From Phaeosaccion multiseriatum (taxonomy: Eukaryota > Protista > Ochrophyta, other classes), in the NCBI GenBank assembly GCA_965112735.1, contig OZ218959.1, positions 1,736,001-1,800,000 on the forward strand: 64,000 nt of DNA, read 5' to 3'. The notes beneath the pieces were generated by a model. The model was given only the letters and a program-made list of their open reading frames with translations, ran no database searches and was not told the origin of the DNA. A program made the position numbers and the translations under genes. Below, piece after piece: positions 56,593 through 63,872 of this stretch. Every line of letters starts with the position of its first letter. Position 1 is the stretch's first letter.

Positions 56593-59500
56593 TCAGTCGA
56601 GGAAGAGAATGGTATGATCGGGGAAGCCCAAGTCCTTAAGATGCTCGTTCATGCTCTGTGGAGTCATAAATGCAGGGAGGAGGAGGGAGGAGGAGGGAGG
56701 AGGAGGAGGGAGGGTGGGGCATGAGAGCATGAAGCGGAAGAGCAGGCGACCACGCGCAAACACAGAGACAGAGAGCGCGAAAGCAACCCCGCATGCTTCG
56801 CGAGCAGCGGCTGAAGCAAGCCCCTCTTGCTTCGCGAGTAGCGAGGAATAATGGAAAAAGCAACCGCAGCAAGCCGCAGACAGACAGAGAGGAAACGAAT
56901 CAAGACTGGGAAAAGAGAGGAAGAAGACGAACAAGAAGGGGTGAATCCCTCCCTGCCTCTAGTCACTTACGTCAGCAAAGGGGGGCGGACCCGAGACGAT
57001 AATCACCGTGTTGCGGGAGTGCTGCTCCGGCTCGGGGACCGTCGAGTCCTCCCTCTCCTCCCTCTCCGCCTCCTCCCCGAGACGGCCGGACAAGAGGCGT
57101 CGCATATGCCTCTGCACATCTGTGTTGTCGCTTGCCATGTCGCGCATGAGTAGCGATCGGAGGATAGTGGTCGCCTCTTTGCCCAGACCCGGTTTGTTGC
57201 CGACGTCCAAGGCACCCAACAGAGAGTCAATCTTGGCAAGTTGCTCCTTCTCCGGCAGCTTCCTTAGCATGCTGTCGTGGTGTTTCTCCCACTCGAGCCC
57301 CTCCAAGGGCTTGGCAAGCATGTTGGCAAGGTGGTCCTACGGGAGAAGCGCCATTTGTTGGCGTTGTTGTTTGTGTTGACAGAAGGTTGACGGGATGCAA
57401 GACAACGCGCTTGTTAGGGCCAAGAGGAGAGGCGGGGTAGCTGTTCAGTGTTGGGGGGGAAAGGAGGGAAGGGGACGCGTAACCGTAGATACCGGGCGCA
57501 CGCACGCACGCACGCACGCACGCATATTCAAACGAGAAATCATAAGCTCTCCCACTTTGCCATCACTTCCGCTCCCTCACTCCCTCTCTCCTGTCCCCTT
57601 CTCTCTCTTGTCTCAGTGACGTACCCGAGAGACCCTTCCGATTGTGCATTGCTCGCGCCGCTGTTGATCCTGCTGGGCCGCTGCAACTACAGCAGCCAAC
57701 CCCTGCCCCCGGGAGGCGCCCCCTCCTTGTGGCTGCCTCTCTGGCGCCGGCGGTGGTGGCAGCGGTGGTGGCGGTGGTGGCAGGGAAGCTCTAGGCTGGG
57801 CAGAGAACAGCACGCTCTGCCCCGAGGTAGTCTCGAGCATTTGCCTGCGGCGGCTGGTGGTGCCGAGCTCGGTAGACTCTCTGGAAGGGGGTCGCGACAG
57901 AGAGAGGGAAGGAGGGTGAAACATGGGGTGGTAAGGGATGAGGGAGGTGCCACCATGTATCAGATGGCAGTGGATGGGGGGCAAACATGATCGACCTCGG
58001 CTGGAGCTTCATTTCTTACCCCTTGTGCTCTGCTGCCTTCTTCCACGCGAGTCCGAGCCGCTGGAGCTGGGGGGGTGGCGGGGGGGGGGGACTGCTGGTG
58101 CTATCGCCTGCCCCACTGACTTCCCTGCTGCGTGCCGCGGTACTGCTGCTAGTGCTGGGCACTGGGACTGCACCACTGCCTGGTCTGCTTGCTGTGACGG
58201 AATAACTGCCTGTGCTCGCGACTGTGATTGTTCCACTGCCTCCTGGCCCACTCCCTGCCCTGCTGCGTGACCCTGCCTGCTGTACGGCAGCCGTAGCCCA
58301 GGCTGATGGGACGCTGCCCGTGCTGTGGCTGTGAGGCCCACTGACCGGTTGGGGCCTCTTAAAGTCCTTGGCCTCCTCCTCCCCATGCTGCTGCTGCTGC
58401 TGTTGCTGCTGCTCCTCCTCCTCGCCTAATGCGGCTCCGCTGGTACCTGTGAAGTCCGTTCGGAAGACCGCAGGAAGGAGGGAAGAAGGCAGCCGAAGGG
58501 TGCACAATCGGAGAGGGAGCATCAGCAATCACAAGAGGGACACAAAGACGTTGATACATGAGGTAGGGCACACAGCGTAGAAGCGCACACACAAGCCTCG
58601 GACGCACGCTCTCTGTTCTCTCTGTGTCGGTCAGCCCACCGGTCTCGCCCCCTCCCGTGCCATCTCACCCCTGAGCCTGACTCGTTGCTCCTTCCTGCCC
58701 ATGGCCTCACTGACCTCTGGTACAGCTCAGCGAGCCAAAGCAGCTCGAAAGCGGTGGGGCATCCTCCGGGCTATGAGATTAGAAGCCAACAAGGAGAGGC
58801 AATCAAGCCAAGCGCGAGGGTGGGGTGGACGGCAGGGGAGTAAACGACGAGAAGTGAGGCAACAAGAAGGAGTAACGACAGACAGAGGGTCGGGCAGGGG
58901 GTCGCTCTCTTCCATCCATCCATCCAGCTATCCATCCATCCGTCCATCCATTCATCCATCCATCCATCCATCCATCCATCCATCCATCCAGCTATCCATC
59001 CATCCATCCAGCTATCCATCCATCCAGCTATCCATCCATCCATCCCTCCCTCCCTCCCTCCCTCCCTCCCTCCCTCCCTCCCTCCCTCCCTCCCTCCCTC
59101 CCTCCCTCCATCCATCCAGCTATCCATCCATCCATCCATCCATCCAGCTATATCCATCCATCCATCCATCCCTCCCTCTCTCCCTCCCTCTCTCCCTCCC
59201 TCCCTCCCTCCGTTCCTTCCTCACCATTCCACGAGCTGTCTCAAGCCCCCGATGGAGTAGCCCCCCTGCCTCTCACTTCCACTGTCCGCCCGTTTACTCC
59301 TCTCACTTGCGCTGCTCAGGCGCCTGTTCCGACTTCCACTGCTCATACGCCTGCTCCTGTGCTCGTGCGTGTCCTCCTCACTACAGAAGATAGAGTAGCG
59401 GAATGAGCCCCCGGCGTCTGTTGCCATCTCCTCGAGCTCTGCCATGCCGAACACGTCACTGCGGAAACAGAAAGCAGGGCACACAGAGAGAGAGCGCGCG

Positions 59501-60060
59501 GACACAGAAGTGGGCAGGAAGAGAAGAGATGAGAGGAGCAAAGCAGAGGTACCCTCGTCATACAAAGCTGAAAACTGAGCCCCCATATGCGCACCTACGA
59601 ACCCACTCACCCACTCACGCACTCACCCACTCACGCACGCACACAACGCACACAACGCACACAACGCACCTCCGGGACCTCGTCTGCCACAGCAGCGTGA
59701 GCGTCTCTGCAGAAGGCTCGGTTATGCTGTCCAGCAGCAACTGCTCCTCATCCGTCAGCTCCTGCTGCTCCTCCTTCTCCTCCTCCTTCTTCTCCTCCTC
59801 CTTCTTGCCCTCTTCCTTCTTCTCCACGGGCATTGGGGCTACCTGTGGAGTCGCCAGTACCCCAAGCACCCCAACCTTCGCCGACCTTGCCAGGGCCAGT
59901 GCCCACGGCCCAGGGGCTTCGCTTGGATCCTCACCTCCCCCTCTCTCTTCATCCTCCTCTTCGCCCCTCATTTCGCACTTCGTTTCGCCCTTCTCTTCAT
60001 CCTCGCTCGTGAGAGGGCTTTGTCTCCTCCGCATCCCAGAATCACTCTTGCCGCCTCCTC

Positions 60061-60097
<37 letters not shown>

Positions 60098-63000
60098 TTC
60101 TCCTTCTCCTCCTCCTCCTCCTGCTCCTCCTCCTCCCCCCCCCCCTCCTCCTCCTCCTCTGGTGCTCGCCACTGCCGCTCTCCACCGGGAGGTCGGGCTT
60201 TTCGCCTCCGCCCTTCCCGCCAACGCCCTGCTCTCCGTCGTGCTCCCCGTCGTGCTCTTAGCATTTGAGTCTCTGCGTACACCGCGCTTCTTGCGGGCAG
60301 CGATGTTGATCAGAATGTGCTGGAGCATCGGGGTGACTCCCGTGCCTGTGGAGGGATGGCAGTGGATGGGGGGTTGGAGGGGGGCGGGGCTGCATGAGAG
60401 TACGCACGCACGCACGCACGCACGCCCCCAGCGGAGAATGAAAGAACGAAGGAAGGAACGAACCAAAGAACGAACGATCGACCGAATCAATGAAGTATCG
60501 AATGCATAAATGAACAGGCACGACTGAAGGGCCTCCCTTCCTCTCCCTCACCGGCGGCGAGCATGTACACGTGGTCGGCATGGTGCTGCATTTGCGGGAC
60601 CTGAAACGGGCCCTGCACACGGATGGTGTCGTCCGCCTGAGGAACCAGTGGGTGATACAGGGCAGCAGTTGGTGATACAGCCGTCTACATGCACACCCAC
60701 TCACACCCACCCACACACACTCACCTTGAGCTCTGAGAAGGCCCTGCTCATCTGCCCTCCGGGGTATAACCGTACGTAATAGTCATAGACATCGTAGTCC
60801 TTCAGCTCCCGCCGCCGGACAGGCGTGTAGGACCTCTGAATCACAGCGCCCTTGTACACCACGCGGAACTAGGGCGGGGAGGGGGGGGTGGAAGTAGGCG
60901 CGTTGGTGATACCGGAGGGAGAGGGAGGAGGAAACGGTAAGGAAGGGGATGCAAGGGAAACAAAGGAGACCAATGAGACAGAGAGGCTGGGATATAGGGA
61001 GCCAGCCCATCATCTCTTTCGGCTATGGCAATGGTAGTGGGTGAAGTACCTTCATATACGCCCCGTTGGTGACGGCTGGCAGTCGGTCGTCCGTCCCAGA
61101 CCTGAGCGACAACTGGAGAATGGGGCTTTCTTCCTCGTTTGGCTCCGAGCTGGAGGTGCGATTGACCTGTAGCTTGCTCACCACAACACACTTGGAGAAT
61201 TGAAGCTCTTGGGCGAAGGCACGTGAGCGACGGCTCGACCGTATCCTATACACGCCGAGTAGGGTGGGGTGGGGTCGAGTGGAGTGGAGTTTACATGGGG
61301 TTTACATGGGGTTCATGGGGGTGGAGGGCGAATGGGTCAATCAGAGACGGTCAGGGAAAGGAAAGACAGAGCGGAGCAGGGCAGGGCAGGGCAGGGCAGG
61401 GCAGGGCAGGGCAGTTGGTGATACAGGGCAGGGACATACGTACTTTGCAAGGAGGCTGCGCTTGCCTTGGCCTCCCTCCTCTTCGTCGGCCTCGTCCAGG
61501 TCAACATCCGGGGCAAGCTCGTGCCTGGAGAGAAGAGCGGGATGAGGAAGGAACAGGATCCGTCAGTCTCTCACTCACGCACTCACGCACTCACGTGTAC
61601 TCACGCAGTCACTCACGCAGTCACTCACGCACGCACACACGCACGCACCCACTCCATCTCCCCTGCCCCCTCTGCCCCCCTCCCTCCTTCCCTCCCTCCC
61701 CGCACTTACCTCTCCACCCAGCCCACGACCGCCTCGTTGATGGCTGCCCACGCTGTGGCGGAGTGCCTGTGTGGGTAGTTGTAGACGCCTTGCCCCATAG
61801 CGCGCAAACCGAGAACTTCCTGCGTCACATCAAGTCCGATGCTCTCCTTCATGATGCGGCTGCCTCCGGGGTGCACCTGTGGGAGTTGGTGCGGCGGTCC
61901 TCAGTTTCAGTTTCAGTTTCAGTTTCAGTTTCAGTTTCAGTTTCAGTTTTGCTGACCTCGATCACTCGTATCGAATCGATTGTTTGTCTTACCTTCATGA
62001 ACTCTCCGATGTCGACGACCATGTCGTGTACCACCACCCACTGGGGGTGGGGGTGGGGGTGGGAGTTGATGAAGGGGAGGGAGGGGGAGGGAGGGAGGGA
62101 GGGAGGGAGGGAGGTAGGGAGGGGGAGAGGCAGGGAGAGAGGGAGGGAGGGAGGGAGGGAGGGAGGGAGGGAGGGAGGGAGGGAGGGAGGGAGGGAGGGA
62201 GGGAGGGAGGGAGGGAGGGAGGGAGGGAGGGAGGGAGGGAGGGAGGGAGGGAGGGAGGGAGGGAGGGAGGGAGGGAGGGAGAGAGGGAGGGAGGCAGGGA
62301 GGGAGGGAGGGAGGGAGAGAGGGAGGGGGAGAGGCAGGGAGAGAGGGATGGAGTGGGGCAAACAGACGCAGACACAGACACAGACACACGGACGTGGGCA
62401 GAGAAGGGACATCGATAAGACCCAAGCCAAACAGTTGGGCCGCGGGGAGGGTGTGGCGTAAGATGCGCAAAAGAAGCCACAGGGTGCCTTCGCTCACTTC
62501 GCTGCTCGTCAACCAATACTCGCGCCCCTCTCTCTCCACCCCCTCCCTCTTCTGTCTCGACCCTATACTATTTTGCCACGCACACACACACACCCACCTT
62601 CTCTCCGTTAAAGACTCTGTCGTTGAACTCCTCCCACGAGTAAGCCCTTCCCTCCATGAGAAGCTCCTCGATGATGGTGCCCCCCTTGGCCTGGCTCCGT
62701 TGGTGGCGAATCTCCTTGTGGATAAAGATGAGCACGTACGCACACGCAAAGACCCAGTACAGGTAGCTCTGTGTCGCAATAAAGGGCACAAAGGATGGTT
62801 GGGGTATGGTATGGAGGAAGAAGTAAGGAGCCATGCAGCAGAGAAGGTGGGAAGAGAACGCGAGAGCCGACCCAGCAATCGGCCGTTTCGCCATAACTCA
62901 TCAGCTAAACTGGAAGTGGAGACTGGAGACTAACAAGCGAGAGGCCAGCAGCAGGGAGGACACAGGCACACCCATGATCAGGGCAGCACCAGGGATACCA

Positions 63001-63872
63001 GGCACCACAGGAGGGGATCGATGGATGGCAGCTGATGGGGAAGGGAAGGGGCACACTGTTTCCTCTTGACCGATACAGTAGCGGCTGGCAGACAAAGGCC
63101 CAAACTGAACGGAATTGAACCCTGACTGGTATTGAAACTGCCACTGCGTACTCTCTCTCTCTCCCTGTGTACACTCTCTCACCTTCAGAGGTCCGAAGAT
63201 GTCTACATTGAGCCCGATGGAGTCCGTGCCGCTGCCGTTGTCAATGCCCTCAATGACAATGGTGCTGTCCTCAGGTGAGATGAGAGTGAGTCCGAGGTAG
63301 ACTTGGTACAGCCCCGTCACGAGCATGAGGCGGCCCATGTCTCGGTGCACAACCTTGATTGTTAAAGGTGATGATTCAGTTTGCCCATCACAAAGCAGTC
63401 AATCATGTGTGTGTGGGGGGGGGAGAGAGGAGCGGTTGGGGTCAGGCTTCTTGGCTGGGCGGGGTTCAACATCTTACATATATAGGTACGTATATAGGGT
63501 GAGGCTTAGGATTAAGTGACGCGAAGCTTAAGCCGCGGGATTAGGGTTGAGGGAAGGATGTGACCTCGGCTGAGGCTTAGGACTCGACTCGACGTACCTT
63601 GTTGACCATGTGGAAGCGACTAGTGTTGGTGCCGATCCACTTGACGCCTCTGTTCTGTATCCCCAACATGCGAATGCTTCCCGTCACAATCTGCCCAACG
63701 ATGGAGAAGAGCAAGGCGATGCCGATCTTGCCATGACGGGTTCGAAACCCTCCTCCGGACGCGGCGATGGCGCTGATGGCCAGAGGGATGGAGGCCTCAG
63801 CGACGAAGCTCGACATGACTTGGTGGATCTCGAGCCAGTTCGGCATGTTCTTGCAGTAGCGGGCCACGTACA
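56593..63872 (-). CDS. Cytochrome b561 - cytochrome b5 - FAD/NAD(P)H b5-reductase-like fusion protein; 5' end lies beyond 64000
   Basis: b561-type TM helices with His (WLEIHQ, RHGKIG, VHRDMGR). Cytochrome b5 motifs ([22 protein letters not shown]|VHPGG..IGLDVT..HS..A). FAD-binding domain (GAYMK|[24 protein letters not shown]). NAD-binding domain (MLAA|[40 protein letters not shown]|[11 protein letters not shown]). Stop at 56593-56595. Confidence 0.85.

Follow-up and report, generated by a model that had tools for sequence, protein, structure and literature searches.

The question raised by the 64,000-nucleotide stretch of Phaeosaccion multiseriatum DNA analysed here (the window) is whether one gene could specify an entire transmembrane electron chain in a single polypeptide, with a cytochrome b561, a cytochrome b5 and an FAD/NAD(P)H reductase joined in that order. 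At a probability of about 75%, the locus is a single gene for a CYBDOM-type b561 fused to a b5 and a cytochrome-b5-reductase-like (b5R-like) module, which would act as an outward electron chain fed by NAD(P)H, with a path and topology that we infer.

On the minus strand, from 63872 to 56593, 16 in-window exons join into a frame of 1137 aa with its sole stop at the 3' end. The exons have AG acceptors in every case (16/16) and GT at all 15 internal donors, and the phases are compatible at all junctions. The first in-window exon is entered in codon phase 1, directly behind an AG (63874-63873). The gene's 5' part is truncated by the window end and continues past 64000, i.e. the window holds the 3' two-thirds of a single protein-coding gene and the remaining N-terminal third (helix 1 with its histidine, the DOMON domain and any peroxidase) is beyond it. 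The borders re-derived here agree to within 1-7 bases with the exons placed by the first-pass annotation, and the motifs that it read (HPGG, RSYTP, YPGGQMS, GTGVTPM and SGPP) are all found in the spliced frame. The exons, numbered from the first in the window, are as follows.

63598..63872, minus strand: exon 1, cytosolic ARY-x-K loop; b561 helix 2 (WLEIH histidine), helix 3 (RHGKIG histidine) and the beginning of helix 4 (FH..NK)
63183..63353, minus strand: exon 2, b561 helix 4 carrying the invariant HR..GR histidine, followed by an outside beta-hairpin loop; the equivalent helix and hairpin are visible in the predicted model of a relative
62598..62768, minus strand: exon 3, the bridging exon; fifth (last) transmembrane helix, then the first cytochrome b5 strand
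61993..62040, minus strand: exon 4, core strand of b5, placed by tblastn with relatives and by alignment
61710..61876, minus strand: exon 5, b5 haem site with VHPGG (axial histidine 1) and HRHS (axial histidine 2)
61444..61524, minus strand: exon 6, acidic linker from b5 to the FAD domain
61050..61245, minus strand: exon 7, N-terminal strands of the FAD-binding barrel
60725..60868, minus strand: exon 8, FAD motifs RSYTP and YPGGQMS; tblastn identity with relatives 42-54%
60552..60636, minus strand: exon 9, closing part of the FAD domain (VQGPF), then the strand into the NAD site
59670..60345, minus strand: exon 10, GTGVTPMLQ helix that would bind NAD(P)H, ~180 aa of in-frame low-complexity insert in which GGA/GCA repeats encode runs of Gly/Ala/Glu/Lys, and the LLWQTRS strand
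59225..59458, minus strand: exon 11, a helix and a strand of the NAD domain, followed by a Ser/Arg-rich stretch in which several RRxS-type sites occur
58770-58715, 58446-58020 and 57880-57625, minus strand: exons 12-14, low-complexity coding insert ending in a conserved GRVSR element; provisional borders
56971..57336, minus strand: exon 15, segment specific to the lineage, followed by the last NAD-domain strand (CGPPxM motif, Ser for Cys)
56593..56655, minus strand: exon 16, C-terminal strand ...TILFLD and stop; relatives end ILYLD or VLFLD

By blastp, the spliced protein is 40.6% identical to a Tribonema protein (P0001) over 470 collinear residues running from b561 through NAD (E 9e-95). It is also collinear with ochrophyte algal proteins of 1400-1800 aa and scores 216 bits against a profile built from the family itself. 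The best matches by themselves point to a probable photosynthetic stramenopile as the source. Seven relatives used as tblastn queries recovered the window exons in unchanged order, and exon 1 as a phmmer query retrieved 9 proteins at E<1e-10. The match of the in-frame exons to relatives is, by sequence comparison, far beyond chance. Furthermore, the whole chain occurs in single ORFs of relatives, including a Trinity ORF of Tribonema gayanum, MMETSP transcript ORFs and an intronless 1633-aa metagenome ORF, and the contig of one relative carries it as a single 1514-aa ORF.

It could be argued that in-frame reading has falsely joined two adjacent genes, a CYBDOM-type b561 and a soluble b5-b5 reductase resembling Ncb5or. 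The sequencing runs that hold the locus are genomic contigs from one sample, which read through the introns and have no splice joints, the Pfam matches from single exons are weak, and soluble fusions of b5 and b5 reductase do exist, e.g. CYB5R4, with 6mv1 matched weakly. However, exon 62768-62598 codes for the last b561 helix and the b5 start alike, with helix and first b5 strand unbroken within it, so b561 and b5 are not separate genes. The compatible phases at every junction tell against a false join, as do more than 50 relatives from two eukaryotic lineages that share the identical fused order, several of them known from transcripts or the intronless ORF. Two genes are very improbable, and the original claim of one gene stands on the bridging exon and on relatives with the full chain in single transcripts and an intronless ORF.

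Within the window, the b561 part comprises four of the five helices and three of the four haem histidines (helices 2, 3 and 4: WLEIH, RHGKIG and VHRDMGR); the helix-1 histidine (FHG) is off-window here and invariant in relatives. Pfam searches on single window exons gave no match for the transmembrane exons, with b561 (PF03188) not detected, and a profile of the family's transmembrane region had no match among PDB sequences. Because single-exon Pfam results are weak or empty, the b561 assignment rests on full-length relatives, conserved histidines and fold. PF03188 was found in eight of ten relatives at E<=0.1 (best E 1.3e-7); P0010 (27.9 bits) and P0025 (31.1 bits) exceed the gathering cut-off of 23 bits, and others score 19-22 bits. 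Four haem-histidine columns, one per consecutive transmembrane helix, hold throughout both the algal and the fungal clade. The fold was examined on P0001, a relative with 47% identity in exon 1, in place of the window protein. An AlphaFold model of its transmembrane part (P0001:545-800) has five helices at pLDDT 74, and a search of this model against the PDB returned b561/Dcytb structures first (4o7g, 4o6y and 5zle, probability 0.96-1.0). Against Swiss-Prot models, 12 Arabidopsis proteins of the b561/CYBDOM family came first (E 3e-5 to 4e-3), followed by FRRS1 (E 0.006 to 0.05). Meanwhile, an ESM Atlas feature search with exon 1 gave b561 at 0.91. As predicted from these alignments and the relative's model, the transmembrane part is a CYBDOM-type, five-helix, two-haem cytochrome b561. 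The first-pass annotation had called b561 and its haem ligands from the letters alone; HMM and fold comparisons of the relatives favour the former, and the histidine columns kept across both clades uphold the latter.

The axial histidine motifs of b5, VHPGG and HRHS in exon 61876-61710, are conserved in all relatives in the alignment. This exon alone, a part-domain, matches Pfam Cyt-b5 (PF00173) at 17.4 bits, below the cut-off; relatives score 24-41 bits, except P0008 at 18.9 bits (below the cut-off). Exon 60868-60725 alone matches FAD_binding_6 (PF00970) at 26.1 bits against a cut-off of 21.1, and the FAD motifs RxY(S/T) and GxxS are present as RSYTP and GGQMS. For NAD(P)H, GTGVTPM fits GxGxxP, and the CGPPxM site reads SGPPPF, with Ser for Cys. 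NAD_binding_1 (PF00175) had no match on single window exons; among the relatives it scores low in the algal ones (18-28 bits) and high in the fungal ones (66 bits). The closest solved sequences to the reductase module are the NADH-cytochrome b5 reductases 2eix and 7rom, together with cytochromes b5, and the C-terminal ...TILFLD is kept to the last residue relative to the other family members. Taken together, the module is NADH-cytochrome-b5-reductase-like, with a predicted cytosolic location and predicted FAD and NAD(P)H binding.

The NAD domain is split by ~500 aa of low-complexity sequence, the borders of which are set by frame only, so that part of it might be intron or might impair the domain. 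For exons 12-14, the insert is supported by the frame alone, along the sole phase-consistent GT..AG path found. The repeat-derived origin of this sequence, the SGPPPF in place of CGPPPM and the NAD_binding_1 scores of the algal relatives, near or under the cut-off, are what would be expected if the copy were decaying or non-functional, its reductase inactivated by inserts and the Cys-to-Ser change and its b561 running on ascorbate or not at all. Against this, the 16 exons contain no premature stop or frameshift and retain all cofactor motifs and the exact C-terminus, while inserts at the same NAD-domain loop throughout the algal clade point to a tolerated or regulatory loop. Going by b5 reductase mutants, the Cys of CGPPxM is dispensable for activity. 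Decay is improbable.

The family to which the window protein belongs extends to ochrophyte algae and to ~40 Glomeromycotina/Mortierellomycotina proteins, in which the domain order is An_peroxidase, DOMON, b561, b5, FAD, NAD. A DOMON domain lies directly N-terminal of b561 in every relative examined, with weak CDH-cyt Pfam matches on it, and from this order the upstream DOMON guessed at by the first-pass annotation is very likely to be encoded beyond 64000. Most relatives start with an animal-type haem peroxidase (An_peroxidase, PF03098) at 93-340 bits, and by the same comparison a peroxidase probably also precedes the DOMON of the window gene. Aligned to 8s6c, the peroxidase of P0010 retains the distal Gln/His (Q..HD), the Arg and the proximal His, and the DUOX1 peroxidase domains 7d3e and 6wxr are weak sequence matches of the relatives' peroxidase. 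In at least one model, the seeming lack of a peroxidase stems from faulty gene calling, as peroxidase ORFs lie just upstream. Five complete relative models have a hydrophobic, signal-peptide-like N-terminus.

Members of the family are already in public protein sets, unstudied, as 'heme peroxidase' or 'cytochrome b5 heme-binding domain-containing protein', and arbuscular-mycorrhizal fungi have many paralogues of it. Word-based protein searches did not return P. multiseriatum's own protein, which is probably absent from the protein collection, and three long ORFs of the window, looked up in an assembly index with a view to the sequence past 64000, had no record there. In a literature search with most subscription journals outside its reach, no description of a b561, b5 and b5R fusion or of a peroxidase-DOMON-b561 fusion was found.

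A DOMON outside and five helices would place b5 and reductase in the cytosol. There, NAD(P)H would reduce the FAD, which would pass single electrons in turn to the b5 haem. Free-standing b561 proteins bind ascorbate at their cytosolic face, and the b5 could dock at this same site; the fused b5 and b5R suggest a cytosolic donor other than ascorbate. The two b561 haems would then carry the electrons through the membrane to the outside DOMON haem, and from there they would probably pass to the peroxidase haem or another outside acceptor. We infer this direction and end point of flow from the layout, and know of no characterised precedent for electron transfer from b5 to b561. By analogy, the protein would act as a dual oxidase/ferric reductase with a built-in donor, made from b561 and b5/b5R instead of NOX parts.

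As a rough split of possible end reactions, peroxidase-driven oxidant or halogenating chemistry on the outside is favoured at something under even odds, removal of outside H2O2 paid for by NAD(P)H is rather unlikely, ferric-chelate reduction is unlikelier again, and other reactions account for the rest. In marine algae, iron is often scarce, and a peroxidase is not seen within the window. The architecture could be real and yet work in iron uptake by reducing ferric chelates, with Fe(III) as the outside acceptor and no peroxidase role, in the manner of plant CRR/HYP1 or animal FRRS1 but fed by NAD(P)H. The transmembrane fold is nearest to that of CYBDOM proteins and FRRS1, known ferric reductases (PMC10784552, PMC10784544). 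However, nearly all relatives have a catalytically intact peroxidase fused before the DOMON, at least one apparent loss being the gene-calling error above, and iron reduction alone leaves this conserved fusion unexplained; a purely iron-reducing role is quite unlikely. The wider proposal, tentative and held at slightly less than an even chance, is that the family forms a class, so far unrecognised, of self-contained 'dual oxidase analogues', in which one polypeptide with an FAD and five b-type/peroxidase haems (b5, two b561, DOMON and peroxidase) would wire cytosolic NAD(P)H to a competent outside peroxidase. Such proteins would carry out extracellular peroxidase, oxidase or halogenating chemistry, or H2O2 destruction, with neither a diffusible reductant nor a NOX domain. 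Their assembly would have been independent of that of DUOX, and two distant lineages would have retained them, ochrophyte algae and arbuscular-mycorrhizal/Mortierella-type fungi.

To our knowledge, there are two known designs for plasma-membrane electron export, NADPH-fed NOX/DUOX/FRE and ascorbate-fed b561/CYBDOM. If active, the chain described here would be a third, a b561 wire with an NAD(P)H-fed b5/b5-reductase and usually an outside peroxidase, and a DUOX-like logic would have evolved on two occasions out of unrelated parts. In brown algae and related groups, wall cross-linking and defence draw on extracellular oxidants and halogenation, and arbuscular-mycorrhizal fungi live in plant apoplasts, where oxidant signalling decides symbiosis; algal wall and defence oxidant chemistry and mycorrhizal oxidant signalling are settings possibly affected. 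The chain would also be a small, naturally occurring system in which to examine electron transfer between haems over long range.

The b5 and reductase part has the b5 fold, the ligands and, with Ser for Cys at CGPPxM, the FAD/NAD motifs of cytochrome b5, b5 reductase and their fusions (CYB5R4/Ncb5or and the haem-FAD fragment of nitrate reductase). Those systems, soluble or held by a tail anchor, pass electrons to desaturases, P450s, Mo-centres or methaemoglobin, whereas the window module is fused with a membrane b561, lacks both CS and Mo-cofactor domains and contains long low-complexity inserts in its NAD domain. Membership of the nitrate reductases was rejected on the missing Mo-cofactor domain, and membership of Ncb5or on the missing CS domain and the membrane-bound character of the window protein. 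Cellobiose dehydrogenase offers another likeness, a flavin-fed b haem in a DOMON-fold domain; its mobile DOMON-like cytochrome domain ferries single electrons to a catalytic metal centre set apart from it (LPMO). That enzyme is fully secreted and takes its electrons from sugar oxidation, whereas here cytosolic NAD(P)H would supply them via the membrane wire.

With CYBDOM proteins (Arabidopsis CRR/HYP1, animal FRRS1/SDR2), the family shares the five-helix b561, the four haem histidines, the ARY-type cytosolic loop, a DOMON directly upstream in all relatives, the best fold matches and, putatively, outward electron flow. CYBDOM proteins have three b haems and reduce Fe(III) on the outside with electrons drawn from ascorbate in the cytosol (PMC10784552). 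The known ones stop after helix five and are ascorbate-fed (PMC10784552), whereas the window protein runs on into a b5 and an FAD/NAD(P)H reductase of its own, and its relatives have a peroxidase before the DOMON.

As in DUOX and NOX/FRE, cytosolic NAD(P)H and a flavin would drive outside chemistry through two membrane haems. Unlike in NOX/DUOX/FRE, the membrane domain is b561 and not the six-helix Ferric_reduct (PF01794), and the flavin module is FAD_binding_6/NAD_binding_1 and not FAD_binding_8/NAD_binding_6; membership of these families was rejected on both grounds. Pfam searches of the relatives gave stray sub-threshold NAD_binding_6 matches and one stray Ferric_reduct match. The first-pass annotation had set the chain beside NOX/FRE, as an alternative to them, and the closest analogy moves to DUOX because most relatives begin with an animal-type haem peroxidase, sharing with DUOX an N-terminal outside domain of the peroxidase family. 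Unlike DUOX, the family has an extra b5 and DOMON haem and no EF-hands, and whereas the DUOX peroxidase domain is reported to lack the proximal His (PMC4420034), that of the relatives keeps it. The likeness to DUOX/NOX/FRE is one of function, not of family, and the proteins described here look like an as yet unstudied equivalent of the animal dual oxidases, assembled from other components.

The minus-strand gene whose in-window part runs from 63872 to 56593 reads as a spliced eukaryotic gene, with exons that code for a b561 membrane part, a cytochrome b5 domain and an FAD/NAD reductase in one predicted polypeptide. Its exons were assembled manually and verified by script. All ten exons from 63872 to 59670 have an AG acceptor and a GT donor and share a common frame, which six further exons extend to its sole stop at 56593, giving a model of 16 exons and 1137 codons in a region of ~0.58-0.60 GC. 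Within the window the first exon starts at codon phase 1, directly behind the AG at 63874-63873, and the sequence upstream of it is pyrimidine-rich and intron-like up to 64000, indicating that the gene extends past the window. The four runs that contain the locus are genomic contigs from one sample, continuous through the introns and without splice joints. The introns are packed with microsatellites (62090-62380, 58930-59200, 61900-61960 and 61380-61425) comprising ~290-base (CCCT)n, (GGAT)n/(GGGA)n arrays, (GAAACT)n and (CCCTG)n, and short-read contigs are broken by them.

When the exons were run singly against Pfam, the transmembrane exons gave no match in that exon-by-exon search, and the two cofactor domains scored as follows:

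61876-61710, minus strand: Cyt-b5, 17.4 bits, below the Pfam cut-off
60868-60725, minus strand: FAD_binding_6, 26.1 bits against a Pfam cut-off of 21.1

The joined protein opens, within the window, with a cytosolic ARY-x-K loop. Helices 2, 3 and 4 come next, carrying WLEIH, RHGKIG and VHRDMGR respectively, and after them a hairpin loop on the outside and the fifth helix. The b5 domain carries VHPGG and HRHS and is followed by an acidic linker; the FAD barrel carries RSYTP, YPGGQMS and then VQGPF, the NAD site [21 protein letters not shown] and [12 protein letters not shown], and the C-terminus is TILFLD. A single exon, 62768-62598, codes for the fifth helix and runs on into the first strand of b5 ([15 protein letters not shown]), which is direct sequence evidence against separate genes for b561 and b5. 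The single polypeptide proposed in the first-pass annotation is supported, its exon coordinates were only 1-7 bases off the rebuilt borders, and its HPGG, RSYTP and YPGGQMS motifs were all recovered in the joined protein, in the order b561, b5, FAD, NAD. Members of the algal clade have long inserts that interrupt the NAD domain behind the GxGxxP helix, and in the window protein these putatively coding inserts consist of GGA/GCA/CAG repeats totalling ~500 residues; at 59700-60290 and 58020-58446 the repeats are read in frame as poly-Gly, poly-Ala, poly-Gln and Glu/Lys runs. Near them, a Ser/Arg stretch at 59290-59370 contains several RRxS-type sites, which might be regulatory phosphorylation sites.

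A phmmer search with exon 1 (91 aa) against 1.84 billion representatives returned 22 matches, nine with E <1e-10, most of them proteins of 1400-1640 aa aligned at residues 350-880. The Pfam order in these relatives is An_peroxidase, DOMON, b561 (weak or passing), Cyt-b5, FAD_binding_6 and NAD_binding_1. Their sources are Tribonema minus, T. gayanum, Chrysoparadoxa australica, Discosporangium mesarthrocarpum and Pylaiella littoralis, as well as environmental data, where one member is a 1633-aa gene without introns on a JGI contig and another a single 1514-aa ORF on a Logan contig. The spliced window protein is collinear with them from b561 through the NAD site (40.6% identity to the Tribonema relative P0001 over 470 residues, E 9e-95), tblastn with seven relatives as queries recovered the window exons in order, and its C-terminal strand and last residues agree with the relatives' C-termini.

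Four lines of evidence concur in identifying the membrane part as a b561. Eight of ten algal members match PF03188 at E<=0.1 (best 1.3e-7). An AlphaFold model of residues 545-800 of P0001, built with the family alignment as input (mean pLDDT 74), shows five long helices plus a hairpin on the outside; the top five PDB folds found with it were Arabidopsis cytochrome b561 and human Dcytb (probability 0.96-1.0, with modest E-values and TM-scores), and the top twelve Swiss-Prot models were Arabidopsis b561 and CYBDOM (DOMON plus cytochrome b561) proteins, with FRRS1 next (E as low as 3e-5). Finally, histidine columns are kept in both the algal and the fungal clade, namely FHG (helix 1), WLEIH (helix 2), xHG/xHA (helix 3) and K-x-x-H-R/K (helix 4); the window protein has all three that fall within the window, and the additional histidine of R-x-HQ is not kept in fungi. 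The b561 assignment and haem-ligand conservation on which the first-pass annotation depended are supported in the family. In a language-model feature search, exon 1 likewise pointed to b561 (0.91, 204 features in common). A family sequence profile matched none of the PDB chains, indicating that the relationship is distant.

A further search recovered this six-domain order in ~40 proteins belonging to Glomeromycotina (Rhizophagus, Gigaspora, Acaulospora, Entrophospora, Paraglomus and others), Podila humilis and MMETSP transcripts. Each of the six Pfam families exceeds its cut-off in the fungal members (Cytochrom_B561 31.1 bits, NAD_binding_1 66.3 bits). Arbuscular-mycorrhizal fungi hold many paralogues, and the protein is present in Podila too (P0025-P0064). 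A maximum-likelihood tree separates fungal and algal clades with 100/100 support each and places the window protein within the algal group (98/98). The patchy distribution between fungi and stramenopiles could reflect ancient origin with loss, or transfer. The nearest tree neighbour, with weak support, is the algal-clade relative P0008, whose model apparently lacks the peroxidase; this absence is a gene-calling artefact, since two An_peroxidase ORFs lie directly upstream on the same strand of its contig. On a JGI metagenome contig (L003:971-5340), prokaryote-style calling cut one family gene into two An_peroxidase ORFs and a 930-aa DOMON-to-FAD ORF, so database members apparently without a peroxidase may be truncated models. 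The DOMON domain that had been suggested to lie upstream of the window exons is very likely there, and the gene probably encodes a peroxidase as well.

Public databases list family members by automatically assigned names, among them 'heme peroxidase' and 'cytochrome b5 heme-binding domain-containing protein'. A literature search found no publication describing or testing the fusion, although most subscription journals were outside its scope and an earlier mention is possible. Reviews on peroxidase superfamilies, the ferric reductase superfamily and CYBDOMs name other fusions and not this one, and one survey records animal-type peroxidases in Mucoromycota without mentioning their extra domains.

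Among solved sequences, the b5-FAD-NAD stretch of the relatives comes closest to NADH-cytochrome b5 reductases (Physarum 2eix, E 2.5e-16; yeast 7rom) and to classical cytochromes b5, which makes the module one of b5/b5-reductase type and not of NOX type. Five complete relatives have a signal-peptide-like hydrophobic start, which would put peroxidase and DOMON outside the membrane, and five helices would leave b5 and reductase on the cytosolic side, the site of NAD(P)H. In CYBDOMs, electrons travel from the cytosol through two b561 haems and a DOMON haem to Fe(III) on the outside (PMC10784552). By analogy, the outer haem would be bound by helices 1 and 3 and the inner one by helices 2 and 4, and the fused b5 would take the place of ascorbate, donating electrons at the basic, conserved ARY-x-K face. 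At the far end, reduction of the peroxidase haem could consume H2O2; alternatively, the haem might be taken to the ferrous state and activate O2. Fe(III) may also be an acceptor. In an alignment with a solved peroxidase, the peroxidase domain of the relative P0010 retains the distal Gln/His/Asp together with the catalytic Arg and proximal His, which argues for a working haem peroxidase at the outside end of the electron wire; DUOX peroxidase domains, by contrast, reportedly lack the proximal His (PMC4420034).
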